Part shown: positions 1 through 5,371 of the stretch, in pieces
Layout of the letters: each line of letters starts with the position of its first letter
Numbering within the stretch: position 1 is the first letter of the stretch
Source of the DNA: Vitrella brassicaformis CCMP3155
Lineage: Eukaryota > Protista > Chromerida
Direction: 5' to 3'
Length of the DNA: 5,371 nt
Assembly: GCA_001179505.1 (NCBI GenBank)
Contig: CDMY01001041.1
Coordinates: 1 to 5,371, forward strand
Position numbers and translations under genes: made by a program
Notes under the pieces: generated by a model
Told to the model about the DNA's origin: nothing
Seen by the model: the letters and a program-made list of their open reading frames with translations, nothing else
Databases searched by the model: none

Positions 1-1282
1 CTTCCCACTTCAGGTAAAAATCACGTGCCGTCCCTCATTGCAGCACTTCTTAGACAGAATTGCTTGTGTGTTTTCTCAGGAGCTCAACGAAATGGGAGCG
101 GATTATCAGCGGGGCGAGGGCGACCTGAGCTTCGAGAGGCGGAACGAGGCGTACCTTCAGTATGCTCCTGGTTTGGCAGTGGCTGCGGCGTCGAAGGCGT
201 TGTCTGACTGGGGTGGTCGTGCGAGCGACATAACCCACGTCATCGGCGTGACGTGCACGGGTCTGATAGTGCCGGGTATCGAGTACCACGTGATCCAAGG
301 GCTCGGTTTGCCGCTGACGACGCAGCGTCTGTCGATCACGCTGATGGGGTGCTTCGGAGGGTGCAGTGGCCTCAAGGCCGCCGCCGCCATTGCGGCTCAG
401 TCGTCGTCGCATCGTGTGCTGGTGGTGTGCTGTGAGCTGTGCACCATCTCGAGCGCCATGGCGACCGAGGTGCACACGGACCAGCTGATCGCCAGCATGC
501 TCTTCGGCGATGGAGCCAGCGCCATTGTGGTGGGATCGGGCATCAGAGCTTGTTCAACGACAGGCTCGAACGACATGAGCAGCAGCAACGAGTACAGCTA
601 CACTGAGCGGCCCATCTATGAGTTCCTCAAGAGCGGCTCGTGCATCATCCCCAACACCCTCCACATGATGGGCTGGGACCTCAGCACCAACGGATGGGAG
701 ATCACCTTGAGCCAGGACATCACACGACAGCTCGGCGACACCATCTGCAGCTTCACCGACACACTCGTCCGCGACGCCCTGGCGCCAAACAACACCTCTG
801 GTGGTCCCACATCATCATCGCAGCAGCAGCAGCAGCCACAACAGCAACACGAGACGACCAGTGGCGGGGCCGCTGGTGCTGGTGATTCGGATCAACCCCA
901 AGCTGCTGGCGGTGCAGCACCACGGTGTCCATCTGCAGCATTGCCGAGCTACAGTGACATGATGTGGCCTCTTCACCCTGGCGGCATGGCCATCATCGAG
1001 GCCATCGAGGTGGCTTGCGGCCTTGACCCCGACTTCCACACCAAGAGCACCCGCCACGTCCTCAAGCAAGTGGGCAACATGTCCAGCGGCACCGTCTACT
1101 TCGTCCTTGACGAACTACGCAAGATGCCCAGAGACAAACTCAAACCATACGCTATGATGTAAGCCACAATCCTTGACTGCACAGCACAGTGAGACTCATT
1201 CTCGGTCTGTTGCTTGTCGCTTGCCTCCAGGGCCTCGTTCGGTCCCGGTCTCACCACCGAAGGAAACCTCCTGAGGATCTGC
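1..1282 (+). CDS. Type III PKS domain A (N-terminus upstream of the window), catalytic triad intact
   Basis: Cys in LMGCFGGC (codon 350-352), His in WPLHPGG (974-976), Asn in VGNMSS (1076-1078). Also LFGDGA and, after splicing, ASFGPGLTTEGNLLRIC. Confidence 0.93.
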
Positions 1283-4200
1283 AACGTTGGTCAAGGACCC
1301 GAGATGGCCATTCCTCGGCCGCTCAGCTTACCGCCTCTTGCCGTGCCCCGGAGGCTTGGGACAGGAACCAACGCACGAGGGGAGAGGGCCACTCCTTACA
1401 TCTTCGGGATAGGCACAGCTAATCCCGAGAATGTCATACCAACCATGGAGGCTGCTGAGGGCTTGGTCGGCTACTATCAAGGCAGGATGGATGAGAGGGA
1501 AGCCAGGCGACTCCGTCGGATCGCCAAGACTTGCGGCATCGATCAGAGGCGGAGTGTCTTCCCACTTCAGGTAAAAATCACGTGCCGTCCCTCATTGCAG
1601 CACTTCTTAGACAGAATTGCTTGTGTGTTTTCTCAGGAGCTCAACGAAATGGGAGCGGATTATCAGCGGGGCGAGGGCGACCTGAGCTTCGAGAGGCGGA
1701 ACGAGGCGTACCTTCAGTATGCTCCTGGTTTGGCAGTGGCTGCGGCGTCGAAGGCGTTGTCTGACTGGGGTGGTCGTGCGAGCGACATAACCCACGTCAT
1801 CGGCGTGACGTGCANNNNNNNNNNNNNNNNNNNNNNNNNNNNNNNNNNNNNNNNNNNNNNNNNNNNNNNNNNNNNNNNNNNNNNNNNNNNNNNNNNNNNN
1901 NNNNNNNNNNNNNNNNNNNNNNNNNNNNNNNNNNNNNNNNNNNNNNNNNNNNNNNNNNNNNNNNNNNNNNNNNNNNNNNNNNNNNNNNNNNNNNNNNNNN
2001 NNNNNNNNNNNNNNNNNNNNNNNNNNNNNNNNNNNNNNNNNNNNNNNNNNNNNNNNNNNNNNNNNNNNNNNNNNNNNNNNNNNNNNNNNNNNNNNNNNNN
2101 NNNNNNNNNNNNNNGCCACGTCCTCAAGCAAGTGGGCAACATGTCCAGCGGCACCGTCTACTTCGTCCTTGACGAACTACGCAAGATGCCCAGAGACAAA
2201 CTCAAACCATACGCTATGATGTAAGCCACAATCCTTAACCGCACAGCACAGTGAGACTCATTCTCGGTGTGTTCCTTGTCGCTTGCCTCCAGGGCCTCGT
2301 TCGGTCCCGGTCTCACCACCGAAGGAAACCTCCTGAGGATCTGCGAGTGCGATGCCAATCCAGCAGGGGCTCGTTTCCCCGCAGCATCTGGGTTGTGCGA
2401 GTCGGACGAACAGCCTGATTCACCCAATGGCAAGATCGACAGGATACCAGATCCCTGTATCAACGAGTCGATCGGGAAGATCCTCGGCTTCCCTGTTGCT
2501 GAGCTGACAAGGGCAGCTACGGGCTTCCCTGTTGCTGAGCTGACAAGGGCACCTACGTTGCGGACTCTCAGACGGCCACCTCCCCTCACTCTTCCTCCCC
2601 CTCGGAAGGACGGCGTGGGTCCTCACCCATCGTGCATGTTCCGCTCCATGCGGTCGTTCATTCTGGGCATCGGTACTGCTGTTCCGTCGACATGTTTGAA
2701 GACCTCAGATGTTGAGTCGCTCGTCCTGGCCCTCAGCCCTGAGGGTCTGAGTGGCTTTGAGATCGTGAGGAGCAAGTTTGTGGCGCGGACGTGCGGGGTC
2801 GACCAAAAGTGGAGCGCCATTACACCACAGGTGAGATGAAGAAGGGACGAATATGAATGACACAATTTCATTTCCCCATTTGTGGTTGTCTGCTCTCCTA
2901 TTCTTTCGCATGATCCGATCAGGACATTGTCAACTTCAAGAATGGTGCAAGCTCGAGCTCGACCGACAGAAAGAACGGCTTTGAGCTGAGGAACGACATA
3001 TTCTGCCGACAGGCTCCTACGCTCGCGGCATTGGCTGCCGAGAAAGCCATCCAGGAGTGGGGCGGTCCGAAGGATGAAATCACTCACATCGTTGGTATCA
3101 CAAGCACGGGAATGGCGGTGCCTGGGATCGAGTTCCACGTCATCAGCAAGCTGGGCCTGCCCCGGACCACACAGCGGGTGTCCGTGACCCTCATGGGGTC
3201 CAACGGGGCGGGGGCTGGCTTGAAGCTTGCAGCAGCCTTCGCGATGCAGAGCTCCCAGTCCAGAGTGCTGGTGGTTTGCTGTGACATGCCGCTTGTGGCT
3301 GCGGCTGGCGTCGGCGACCTGCGAGCAAACGAGGCCCTCATCCCACTTTACGGTGACGGGGCGTCTGCGGTGGTGATCGGATCCACGCTGCGGTCAAGTG
3401 AGAGTGCTCTGTACGAGTACCTGGCCGGTCGGTCCGAGATCCTGCCGAACACCGACGACCTCGAGTCGTTTACCTGCAGCAAGGAAGGCGTTGAGATCTC
3501 TTTCAGTGCCGACATCCCCCGCAGGATCTGCCACAAGATCCCCGACTTCGTAGACAACCTGTCGATGGCGGCCTTTGGTCAACACATCCCCTTCGATCAG
3601 ATGCTCTGGCCGGTCCACCCAACAGCCCTCCCCTACATCAGCATGTTCGAGGAGGCATGCGCTCTCGACCCGGATCTCAGCACCATGGCTTCGCGGGAGT
3701 GTCTGCGAAAATTCGGCAACATGTATGGGGCGTCCCTCTTCTTCGTCCTCGACGATCTGAGGAGGCGGCCACCGACAGTCGAGTGTGCAGTGACGGCGTC
3801 GATAGCGCCAGGGCTCGCGATGGAGGGTGACATCTTCAAGATCTGCCACGGAGACGGCGAAATGGACACTGCAGAGGGGGTCGTCAGAAGGATTCTGGAA
3901 CAAAGGGACGAACACATGCCATCGCATTTCCCTCTGCCCCCCGCCGTCCCAATGCGCTACACTCTCGAGAATCCGCACATTCTCGGCATCGGGACGGCGA
4001 ATCCCGAGAATGCGATCCCGACTCTTGAGGCGGCAGATGGGATGATCAACTTCTACCGCGAGAGCATCACGGAGAAGGAGGCCAGGCGACTCCGTCGGAT
4101 CGCCAGGACCTGCGGCATCGATCAGAGGCGGAGTGTCGTCACGCTCGAGGTCAGCAACAAAAGACGCTGCCCAAGCCACGCACCGTATCTTCATTGTCAT

Positions 4201-5371
4201 TGGTTGCTTCATGTGTGTAGGAGCTGAATGCACTGGGCGAGGAGCTGAAGCGCGGCGAGGTTGACCTGAGCTTCGAGACTCGGAACGACCTCTATCGTCA
4301 GTACGCTCCTGGTTTGGCAGTGGCTGCGGCGTCGAAGGCGTTGTCTGACTGGGGTGGTCGAGCGAGCGACATAACCCACGTCATCGGCGTGACGTGCACG
4401 GGTCTGATAGTGCCGGGTATCGAGTACCACGTGATCCAAGGGCTCGGTTTGCCGCTGACGACGCAGCGTCTGTCGATCACGCTGATGGGGTGCTTCGGAG
4501 GGTGCAGTGGCCTCAAGGCCGCCGCCGCCATTGCGGCTCAGTCGTCGTCGCATCGTGTGCTGGTGGTGTGCTGTGAGCTGTGCACCATCTCGAGCGCCAT
4601 GGCGACCGAGGTGCACACGGACCAGCTGATCGCCAGCATGCTCTTCGGCGATGGAGCCAGCGCCATTGTGGTGGGATCGGGCATCAGAGCTTGTTCAACG
4701 ACAGGCTCGAACGACATGAGCAGCAGCAACGAGTACAGCTACACTGAGCGGCCCATCTATGAGTTCCTCAAGAGCGGCTCGTGCATCATCCCCAACACCC
4801 TCCACATGATGGGCTGGGACCTCAGCACCAACGGATGGGAGATCACCTTGAGCCAGGACATCACACGACAGCTCGGCGACACCATCTGCAGCTTCACCGA
4901 CACACTCGTCCGCGACGCCCTGGCGCCAAACAACACCTCTGGTGGTCCCACATCATCATCGCAGCAGCAGCAGCAGCCACAACAGCAACACGAGACGACC
5001 AGTGGCGGGGCCGCTGGTGCTGGTGATTCGGATCAACCCCAAGCTGCTGGCGGTGCAGCACCACGGTGTCCAGCTGCAGCATTGCCGAGCTACAGTGACA
5101 TGATGTGGCCTCTTCACCCTGGCGGCATGGCCATCATCGAGGCCATCGAGGTGGCTTGCGGCCTTGACCCCGACTTCCACACCAAGAGCACCCGCCACGT
5201 CCTCAAGCAAGTGGGAAACATGTCCAGCGGCACCGTCTACTTCGTCCTTGACGAACTACGCAAGATGCCCAGAGACAAACTCAAACCATACGCTATGATG
5301 TAAGTGACAGACTGTTATAGCAATGGCCTGCAATCCCTCTCAATACATCCTTTTCCTGTGTGGCTCAGGGC
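1..5371 (+). CDS. Partial spliced CDS, open at both ends: multi-domain tandem type III PKS (chalcone synthase-like) protein. Exons: <1-13, 80-1158, 1231-1570, 1637-2220 (contains gap), 2293-2830, 2923-4149, 4221-5299, 5369->5371
   Basis: Manual splicing at GT-AG sites joins the ORFs 38..1162, 1214..2224, 2267..2839, 3031..4227 and 4314..5303 into one stop-free frame. This is about 1620 codons counting the N gap, or about 1785 if the gap hides a full A-like core. Splicing restores split CHS motifs, e.g. KPYAM-M-ASFGPGLTTE (CHS GFGPGLTxE). CHS motifs recur up to four times: ILGIGTANP, LMGCxGG, LFGDGA, HPGG, GNMSS, FGPG. Confidence 0.9.
14..79 (+). other. Spliceosomal intron, 66 nt, phase 0
   Basis: CAG|GTAAAA ... 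GTGTTTTCTCAG|GAG. Same position as the stop-containing or frame-breaking introns 2831-2922 and 4150-4220. Confidence 0.8.
821..835 (+). repeat. (CAG)5 coding microsatellite, short polyQ; second copy at 4962-4976
   Basis: CAGCAGCAGCAGCAG within SSSQQQQQPQQQH. Confidence 0.85.
1159..1230 (+). other. Spliceosomal intron, 72 nt, phase 2
   Basis: AT|GTAAGC ... TTGCCTCCAG|G. Contains the in-frame TAA; removal gives YAMMASFGPG. Confidence 0.93.
1397..2344 (+). CDS. Type III PKS domain B, tandem copy of A; core hidden by the assembly gap
   Basis: Starts YIFGIGTANPEN and ends GNMSS...FGPGLTTEGNLLRIC (Asn codon 2138-2140). Visible coding sequence that overlaps A is identical to A. The Cys and His codons fall in the N run and cannot be verified. 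Confidence 0.8.
1558..1814 (+). repeat. Exact direct repeat of 1-257 (period 1557 nt)
   Basis: Base-by-base comparison found no mismatch over 257 nt, including the 66-nt intron. Confidence 0.97.
1571..1636 (+). other. Spliceosomal intron, 66 nt, phase 0 (identical to 14-79)
   Basis: Same sequence and same homologous position as intron 14-79. Confidence 0.8.
1815..2114. other. Assembly gap (300 N)
   Basis: Run of N. The flanks correspond to A positions 257 and 1053, so a full A-like copy would need 795 nt here. Confidence 0.98.
2115..2344 (+). repeat. Direct repeat of 1053-1282
   Basis: 230 nt with 4 mismatches, all inside the intron (1175/2237, 1178/2240, 1207/2269, 1212/2274). The sequences diverge right after the LLRIC codons. 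Confidence 0.95.
2221..2292 (+). other. Spliceosomal intron, 72 nt, phase 2
   Basis: AT|GTAAGC ... CCTCCAG|G. Four substitutions relative to 1159-1230. Confidence 0.93.
2486..2557 (+). repeat. In-frame 36-nt tandem duplication (2 copies) in the B-C linker
   Basis: GGCTTCCCTGTTGCTGAGCTGACAAGGGCA(G/C)CTACG twice; encodes GFPVAELTRAAT then GFPVAELTRAPT. Confidence 0.95.
2657..3846 (+). CDS. Divergent type III PKS domain C with catalytic Cys replaced by Ser (putative pseudo-enzyme or decarboxylase-only domain)
   Basis: FILGIGTAVP start. LMGSNGAG with Ser codon TCC at 3199-3201, LYGDGA, WPVHPTA (His 3616-3618), FGNMYGAS (Asn 3718-3720), SIAPGLAME. The frame is uninterrupted after removing intron 2831-2922. 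Confidence 0.9.
2831..2922 (+). other. Spliceosomal intron, 92 nt, phase 0
   Basis: CAG|GTGAGA ... pyrimidine tract ... GATCAG|GAC. AT-richer than the exons and contains stops. Removal joins SAITPQ to DIVNFK and into the 3031 ORF frame. Confidence 0.88.
3976..5371 (+). CDS. Type III PKS domain D, catalytic triad intact, C-terminus runs off the window
   Basis: HILGIGTANPEN start. Cys 4491-4493, His 5115-5117, Asn 5217-5219. The last exon begins at 5369 with the same G-GC as the FGPG exons of A and B. Confidence 0.93.
4150..4220 (+). other. Spliceosomal intron, 71 nt, phase 0
   Basis: GAG|GTCAGC ... GTGTGTAG|GAG. Removal joins RRSVVTLE to ELNALGEE, matching RRSVFPLQ|ELNEMGAD in B. Confidence 0.92.
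4305..5304 (+). repeat. Direct repeat of 164-1163
   Basis: 1000 nt with 3 mismatches: 220/4361 (silent), 932/5073 (Ser/Ala), 1075/5216 (silent). Confidence 0.95.
5300..5368 (+). other. Spliceosomal intron, 69 nt, phase 2
   Basis: AT|GTAAGT ... CTTTTCCTGTGTGGCTCAG|GGC. Same position as 1159-1230 but unrelated in sequence beyond GTAAG. Confidence 0.9.

Follow-up and report, generated by a model that had tools for sequence, protein, structure and literature searches.

Gene architecture

The window analysed here is an entire scaffold of 5371 nucleotides (nt) from Vitrella brassicaformis CCMP3155, with 60% GC. It carries a gene built of consecutive type III polyketide synthase (PKS) domains, termed A, B, C and D, and our main subject is domain C, in which a serine takes the place of the catalytic cysteine. 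The annotated product of the scaffold is CEM39573.1 (UniRef A0A0G4H7E4), with 1501 amino acids (aa), reported as an "unnamed protein product" and named "Chalcone synthase" in UniRef. All domains, linkers and introns given below lie on the forward strand.

The exons, located at 80-1158, 1231-1570, 1637-1814, 2115-2220, 2293-2830, 2923-4149 and 4221-5299, form one stop-free frame, broken by an assembly gap of 300 N (1815-2114) inside domain B. The introns are short and of the GT-AG type, and the removal of four of them yields a single frame across A, B (with its gap), C and D. The splice model derived here is that of CEM39573.1, which merely skips the gap. Because the annotated protein joins the gap flanks directly (…ITH|QVGN…), its B domain is an artefactually shortened chimera. 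Judging from the frame and its domain content, a single Vitrella gene concatenates at least four type III PKS domains of the chalcone synthase (CHS) type.

Domain A (80-1282; exons 80-1158 and 1231-1282, intron 1159-1230) corresponds to residues 1-373 of CEM39573.1, and the exon for its N-terminus is located before the scaffold start. It has the Cys-His-Asn triad and the sequence type common to A, B and D. The A-B linker has 39 aa (1283-1399), and this junction is found in one DNA contig and in one RNA contig. Domain B (1400-2344) is composed of the segments 1400-1570 and 1637-1814, the gap, 2115-2220 and 2293-2344; the gap covers the codons of its Cys and His, and a B-type exon junction 1570|1637 is spliced in an RNA contig.

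Next comes the B-C linker, proline-rich and 104 aa long (2345-2656). It holds an in-frame tandem duplication of 36 nt (12 codons, GFPVAELTRA-type), with the copies at 2486-2521 and 2522-2557, of which a metagenome contig from the European Nucleotide Archive (L001, in ERZ893784) has one copy only. A proline-rich motif is common to the linkers.

Domain C has a first exon at 2657-2830, with the motif GVDQKWS at its end, and a second exon at 2923-3846, which encodes the Ser, the His, the Asn and most of the motif changes described below. Between them lies a GT-AG intron of 92 nt (2831-2922), and RNA contigs from two runs (X6 and X8) skip exactly these 92 nt. The C-D linker follows, with 44 aa (3847-3978) and one predicted helix inside. 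Domain D (3979-5299; exons 3979-4149 and 4221-5299, intron 4150-4220, with the splice seen in RNA) has the Cys-His-Asn triad. Its final strand is encoded by an exon past the scaffold end, and an RNA contig extends into this next exon (loose end GCCTCGTTCGGTCC).

In terms of similarity between domains, A and D share 98.6% nt identity, and between A and B the identity is 100% over the part readable in the two. The near-identical stretches include introns (window 108-1163 versus 4249-5304, and 1-257 versus 1558-1814) and exclude C. From this pattern, A, B and D seem to have recently been duplicated or homogenised by gene conversion, bypassing C. The A-B linker contig has a depth of 22.6 and the C contig one of 23.3. 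These near-equal depths, which are not copy numbers, give only a hint of one copy each, that is, of about four domains.

The A/D-type domains also have two inserts. One, of about 55 aa, is of low complexity and rich in Gln and Gly, and separates the fold halves (window 4935-5100 and 794-960); the other, of about 17 aa, is Ser-rich. Both are absent from C and from relatives outside this gene, and AlphaFold gives them a per-residue confidence (pLDDT) below 50.

Sequence support and expression

Contigs from public runs were compared with the window between 2115 and 4861. A DNA contig spans 2315-4327 with 0 differences from the scaffold. An RNA contig of 2837 nt from run X6 also has 0 differences, and is spliced exactly at 2830|2923 and 4149|4221; it reaches from the B-C linker across C, the C-D linker and D into the next exon. 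C and D are therefore translated from one mRNA in one frame. Run X8, which belongs to a separate study, has both of the same splices and again 0 differences.

The preliminary description had read the codon at 3199-3201 as TCC. This is the codon found in the DNA contig, in the spliced RNA contig and, independently, in L001; no TGC was seen, and there is no RNA-DNA difference at this position. C and both flanking linkers are unique sequence.

An apparent transcript that skips C, with a joint from 2344 to 4072, was rejected. The joint has 210 letters between its two sides, corresponding to window 1283-1492, and reflects a mapping of the A-B junction onto shared sequence.

Runs filed under other organism labels (X2, X8 and X10) contain 64-98% of the stretch; their source may be this species filed under a different label, a co-culture or contaminating material. 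Microbial-mat and marine-sediment metagenomes (runs X13-X19) contain 20-40% of its words. The contigs of run X13 are about 96% identical and share with L001 a 4-nt intron deletion at 4156, so a close relative of Vitrella lives in such habitats.

The active site of domain C

After removal of the intron, domain C has 366 codons without stop or frameshift. The preliminary description gave about 365 codons, for an interval (2657-3846) that includes the 92-nt intron. Both Pfam halves of the family are recognised, Chal_sti_synt_N (PF00195, 3e-31, 109 bits) and Chal_sti_synt_C (PF02797, 6.6e-15, 55.9 bits), over a gathering cut-off of 27 bits. The best match among PDB sequences is the type III PKS domain of Steely1 (2h84), at full length and 1.3e-39. 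In this alignment the TCC codon places a Ser opposite the catalytic Cys ('lmgsngag' in C versus 'lmgclagl' in Steely1), and the catalytic His and Asn of Steely1 are matched by His 3616-3618 and Asn 3718-3720.

We then placed C in a family alignment of 120 domains from an exhaustive search, with 42 columns conserved at 85% or more; residues are numbered as in alfalfa CHS, assigned by motif. The Cys column is Cys in 120/120 of the aligned domains and Ser in C. In total, C deviates at 11 of the 42 conserved columns. Nine of these changes are C164S, E192D, F215Y, G305T, G306A, S338Y, S339G, F373I and G374A, and the other two, located elsewhere, are one Trp-to-Phe and one Leu-to-Phe.

The motif changes listed in the preliminary description were all recovered. 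The gatekeeper Phe215 becomes Tyr (codon 3349-3351), turning LFGDG into LYGDG. GNMSS becomes GNMYG, with the Tyr of S338Y at codon 3724-3726, HPGG becomes HPTA, and GIDQRRS becomes GVDQKWS. FGPG becomes IAPG, as part of a loop that changes from GFGPG to SIAPG. His303 and Asn336 are kept, as had also been described, together with Pro375 and most of the conserved structural residues.

These changes are not evenly distributed. Conserved active-site positions are changed in 9 of 15 cases, versus 2 of 27 for the other conserved positions (Fisher p = 4e-4), which points to change targeted at the active site, with the scaffold of the fold spared. The triad of C is Ser-His-Asn, and not the Cys-His-Asn of type III PKSs; C is thus a type III PKS homolog by descent and not a functional condensing member.

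The same substitution has been made by mutagenesis elsewhere. Tomato CHS C164S has no product formation and no acyl loading (PMC7608815), and in RppA the mutation C138S abolishes activity (PMC6274091). Since these Cys-to-Ser mutants are inactive, C is almost certainly non-condensing, and by this comparison it can hardly be a normal condensing domain. As for the neighbours, the preliminary description placed C between catalytically intact domains; this holds for D (Cys, His and Asn) and for A, and the Cys and His of B are unreadable in the gap.

Evolutionary constraint and origin

L001 is 96.3% identical to the scaffold and colinear with it, from the end of the preceding domain B through C into D. 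It keeps all 11 deviant residues of C. The two copies of C differ by 14 non-synonymous and 16 synonymous changes, with a ratio of non-synonymous to synonymous substitution rates (dN/dS) of 0.27 for this one sequence pair (binomial p = 6e-4 versus neutrality). For the exons of D the same comparison gives 0.2-0.47, so the constraint on C is no weaker. The introns diverge by 3-14% and their indels are not multiples of three. The sole coding indel is the in-frame 36 nt of the B-C linker.

On these sequence comparisons, C is under purifying selection, with its Ser fixed in two lineages. The earlier impression that C does not look like a decayed pseudogene is borne out. The domain is expressed and spliced together with D, its dN/dS is not near 1, the L001 copy has no stop or frameshift, and the predicted fold is complete and confident (see below).

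A maximum likelihood tree of 63 domains places C and the C of L001 as sister to A and D (SH-aLRT 99). The stem branch of C measures 1.23 changes per site versus 0.27 for A/D, that is, 4.6 times longer, and the protein identity of C to A, B and D is 43%. The first intron position is common to C and to A, B and D, and the second intron of A, B and D is absent from C. The sister position and the long stem indicate that C is a duplicate within this gene lineage, which changed fast and was then frozen.

Fold and proposed pairing of C and D

AlphaFold2 on C, with an alignment of 62 sequences, gave a pLDDT of 93.2 and a predicted template modelling score (pTM) of 0.93. Compared by Foldseek with solved type III PKSs, the model reaches template modelling (TM) scores of 0.89-0.92, with a complete CHS-like thiolase fold. 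Among these structure matches is the Evodia alkylquinolone synthase, a natural type III PKS with Tyr215, whose main reaction is not known to rely on malonyl-CoA.

We also modelled C, the linker and D as a single chain of 827 residues, which gave a pTM of 0.88, with 83 linker and insert residues disordered. Two independently floating domains could not reach such a value, so the packing of C against D appears to be defined in the model. This would fit a pairing of the two domains, perhaps at the canonical dimer interface. In terms of linkers, those between A and B (39 aa) and between C and D (44 aa) are short, versus the long one of 104 aa between B and C.

The position equivalent to CHS Met137, a residue that in the CHS structure reaches into the cavity of the partner, is Val in both C and D. 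A role of C as a chain-length partner, one of the options of the preliminary description, found no support here and was dropped, as this position is identical in the two domains.

Type III PKSs are homodimers (PMC5898002). Given that C lacks the Cys and that D follows after a short linker, we infer that C is the partner of D. The fused heterodimeric partner proposed in the preliminary description fits the C-D model, the linker pattern and the parallel in green algae described in the next section.

Related proteins and a parallel in prasinophytes

In an exhaustive HMMER search with 2424 matches, the only Ser-His-Asn domain among the best 150 was the L001 copy. A word search with the 308-aa exon returned only the 97%-identical environmental copy, and a scan of metagenome loci of the Joint Genome Institute (JGI) found no closer C-type relative, with matches of 30-41% identity only. 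A word search limited to long proteins had no match, at a low sensitivity that also missed known distant matches. Fusions related to the Steely type (P0009, P0012 and P0013) rank with the closest relatives that the Vitrella domains have.

Tandem type III PKSs were found in prasinophytes. In Cymbomonas tetramitiformis, the hypothetical protein KAK3233920.1 (4818 aa) has 12 type III PKS domains, arranged as six near-identical repeats of an X-Y pair, with Cys-His-Asn in 12/12 domains. A Pyramimonas transcript (MMETSP1081) encodes an X-Y di-domain in which X has Ala-His-Asp and Y an intact triad. In the JGI contigs Ga0186053_101663 and Ga0186052_101792 there is also an X-Y pair, with Ser-Glu-Tyr in X and an intact triad in Y. 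The protein of these two contigs opens with the end of a preceding domain, and its hydrophobic C-terminal stretch could be a membrane tail anchor.

The linkers of these proteins are of two lengths, with 19-20 aa between X and Y versus 48-60 aa between Y and X (Cymbomonas alternates 19 and 60 aa). Where a short-linker pair contains a degenerate domain, in Vitrella as in the prasinophytes, that domain is on the N-terminal side. In the maximum likelihood tree, the branches ending in degenerate X domains are longer than those of their Y partners, by a factor of about 2.6, and the X/Y duplication is independent of the one in Vitrella.

As for previous reports, our literature search found no description of a natural Cys-less type III PKS domain or of a tandem or di-domain type III PKS, none of a Vitrella type III PKS, and none of the 12-domain Cymbomonas protein. 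A genome-mining survey appears to be without a type III PKS for Vitrella, in a table whose columns are unlabelled (PMC7073580). For Pyramimonas, "overlapping N and C domains" were remarked and left uninterpreted (PMC7284882). The sequence of CEM39573.1 is already public; its reading as a protein with a Cys-less partner domain is new.

Comparison with known systems

The canonical homodimeric type III PKS, with the C-terminal domain of Steely1 (2h84) as the closest structure by sequence, has the same Pfam domains as C and a fold at a TM of about 0.9. The canonical enzyme is a free subunit with a Cys nucleophile; C has Ser and is fused in tandem. Furthermore, the canonical residues Phe215, Gly305, Gly306, Ser338, Ser339, Phe373 and Gly374 are all replaced in C.

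A second likeness is to the ketosynthase and chain-length factor of type II PKSs (KS-CLF, or KS alpha/KS beta) and to PqsBC, where an active enzyme of the thiolase fold is joined by a Cys-less paralog under selection. In CLF a Gln replaces the Cys, and the chain tunnel is shaped by this subunit; PqsB is not known to retain any catalytic residue. C shares two traits with such partners: it is a paralog of an active domain without the nucleophilic Cys, and it is under purifying selection in the one pair of lineages compared. Nevertheless, KS-CLF and PqsBC belong to another branch of the thiolase superfamily, and C is fused to its neighbour covalently and retains both His and Asn, with no sign of shaping a tunnel.

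The KSQ and KSS loading domains of modular type I PKSs resemble C in their natural replacement of the active-site Cys and in sharing a polypeptide with active domains. These domains decarboxylate malonyl-ACP (ACP, acyl carrier protein). C, on the contrary, has no ACP context, and it is altered at sites where CHS mutants show impaired decarboxylation (F215Y, PMC6274091) or loss of the canonical activity (G305A, PMC7608815).

The prasinophyte tandem proteins are alike in having several domains with alternating linkers, and in two of them the N-terminal member of the pair is triad-less and faster-evolving. They differ in the independent duplication and in that their degenerate X has also lost His and/or Asn, with all domains intact in Cymbomonas. 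Finally, Steely-type fusions also hold a type III PKS domain within a larger eukaryotic multidomain protein. However, in these a single active type III domain is combined with type I modules or with ligases, and the Vitrella gene concatenates type III domains only.

Proposed explanation and alternatives

We lean modestly towards C being a maintained, non-condensing pseudo-dimer partner of D. A tandem duplication within one Vitrella gene would have given rise to C as a paralog of the A/B/D-type domains. A burst of active-site change would have followed the duplication (C164S, F215Y, G305T/G306A, S338Y/S339G and SIAPG), with the core kept, and purifying selection would have maintained C since that burst. 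C would no longer condense; together with D it would make up an intramolecular pseudo-dimer across the 44-aa linker, with C as the half without catalysis. The four-domain protein would then consist of the pairs A:B and C:D, joined by the 104-aa B-C linker. The possible gain from such an asymmetric pair may lie in stability, in regulation, or in the handling of substrate or product.

A wider claim is that tandem-fused type III PKSs are obligate intramolecular pseudo-dimers, in which a KS/CLF-like asymmetry has evolved at least twice, in Vitrella and in Pyramimonas-type green algae. We find this plausible, although we would lean slightly against it.

Several points weigh against C as the partner of D. 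The full architecture is partly hidden, with the gene running off the scaffold at both ends and domain B overlapping the assembly gap. The dN/dS of C comes from 30 substitutions in one sequence pair, and the relation of L001 to the scaffold gene may be one of paralogy, not orthology. The kept His and Asn leave room for residual catalysis. Moreover, AlphaFold may pack any two such domains, and D was modelled without its last strand.

Among the alternatives, C may be a dedicated malonyl-CoA decarboxylase, whose His and Asn would supply the condensing domains next to it with an acetyl starter in a KSQ/CLF-like manner, as the preliminary description also proposed. We regard this as unlikely, even with both residues kept and with selection implying that C keeps some function. 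Alfalfa CHS with C164A or C164S retains most of its malonyl-CoA decarboxylation, but F215Y, which C also has, severely impairs it (PMC6274091). C also has G305T/G306A, and in tomato CHS G305A abolishes the canonical activity (PMC7608815). S338Y further places a bulky residue adjoining the Asn. At 43% identity, the joint retention of His and Asn by chance would not be unlikely, and two kept residues are not significant or, in themselves, evidence of catalysis. In the prasinophytes, the counterparts of C persist despite the loss of Asn, or of both His and Asn.

It is quite unlikely that the gene encodes a polyprotein cut in its linkers, leaving C as a free monomer, a homodimer or part of a mixed dimer, which would also go against a fixed C:D pair. 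The near-identical A, B and D (98.6-100% in nt) and the 12-unit Cymbomonas protein do resemble copy-number amplification, and the linkers have their proline-rich motif in common. However, neither a cleavage motif nor support from proteomics was found, the alternation of short and long linkers in two lineages fits fixed pairs, and the di-domain C-D model is compact.

C could also have gained a new activity with Ser as nucleophile, as an acyltransferase or esterase that forms an acyl-O-enzyme and loads starters or releases products. All of Ser, His and Asn are present, the changes of the active site amount to remodelling and not to randomisation, and L001, the second lineage, has the same residue at 11/11 deviant positions. 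A known case of a Ser nucleophile is DpsC, a KAS III-like acyltransferase with a Ser-His-Asp triad. C differs from it in having Asn as the third residue and in belonging to the CHS-type family. Furthermore, C164S mutants of CHS have no acyl loading (PMC7608815). Among the best 150 of the 2424 matches there is no other Ser-His-Asn domain bar the near-identical L001 copy, and there is no characterised relative with such an active site. Taken together, we consider a Ser-based activity very unlikely.

That C is dead, on its way to being lost and tolerated only as a spacer, would agree with its lost Cys and with a stem 4.6 times longer than that of D/A, but this is highly improbable with a dN/dS of 0.27, significantly below 1, with two lineages free of stops and frameshifts, and with a pLDDT of 93 and 25/27 conserved positions outside the active site kept. 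Lastly, the scaffold is short, built of repeats and interrupted by an N gap, which might favour an artefact of sequencing or assembly behind the Ser codon or the placement of C. We take the chance of this as practically negligible, since C and its linkers are unique, matched without differences by one DNA and one RNA contig, and colinear in L001.

Implications

Multi-domain type III PKS genes in algae are flagged here as uncharacterised. The usual description of a type III PKS is that of a simple homodimer, with two identical and active subunits. If C is indeed the non-condensing partner of D, the principle of an active subunit with a dead paralog, seen in type II KS-CLF, in PqsBC and in KSQ, would extend to a third PKS class. 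Under the wider claim of an asymmetry evolved at least twice, the heterodimeric type III PKS would be a natural and recurring architecture, in which the inactive half would tune stability, substrate access or product. The Vitrella protein would also offer a ready single-chain system for probing what the second protomer contributes in type III PKS dimers. The prasinophyte parallel suggests a general route to such enzymes, through tandem fusion followed by the loss of one active site.

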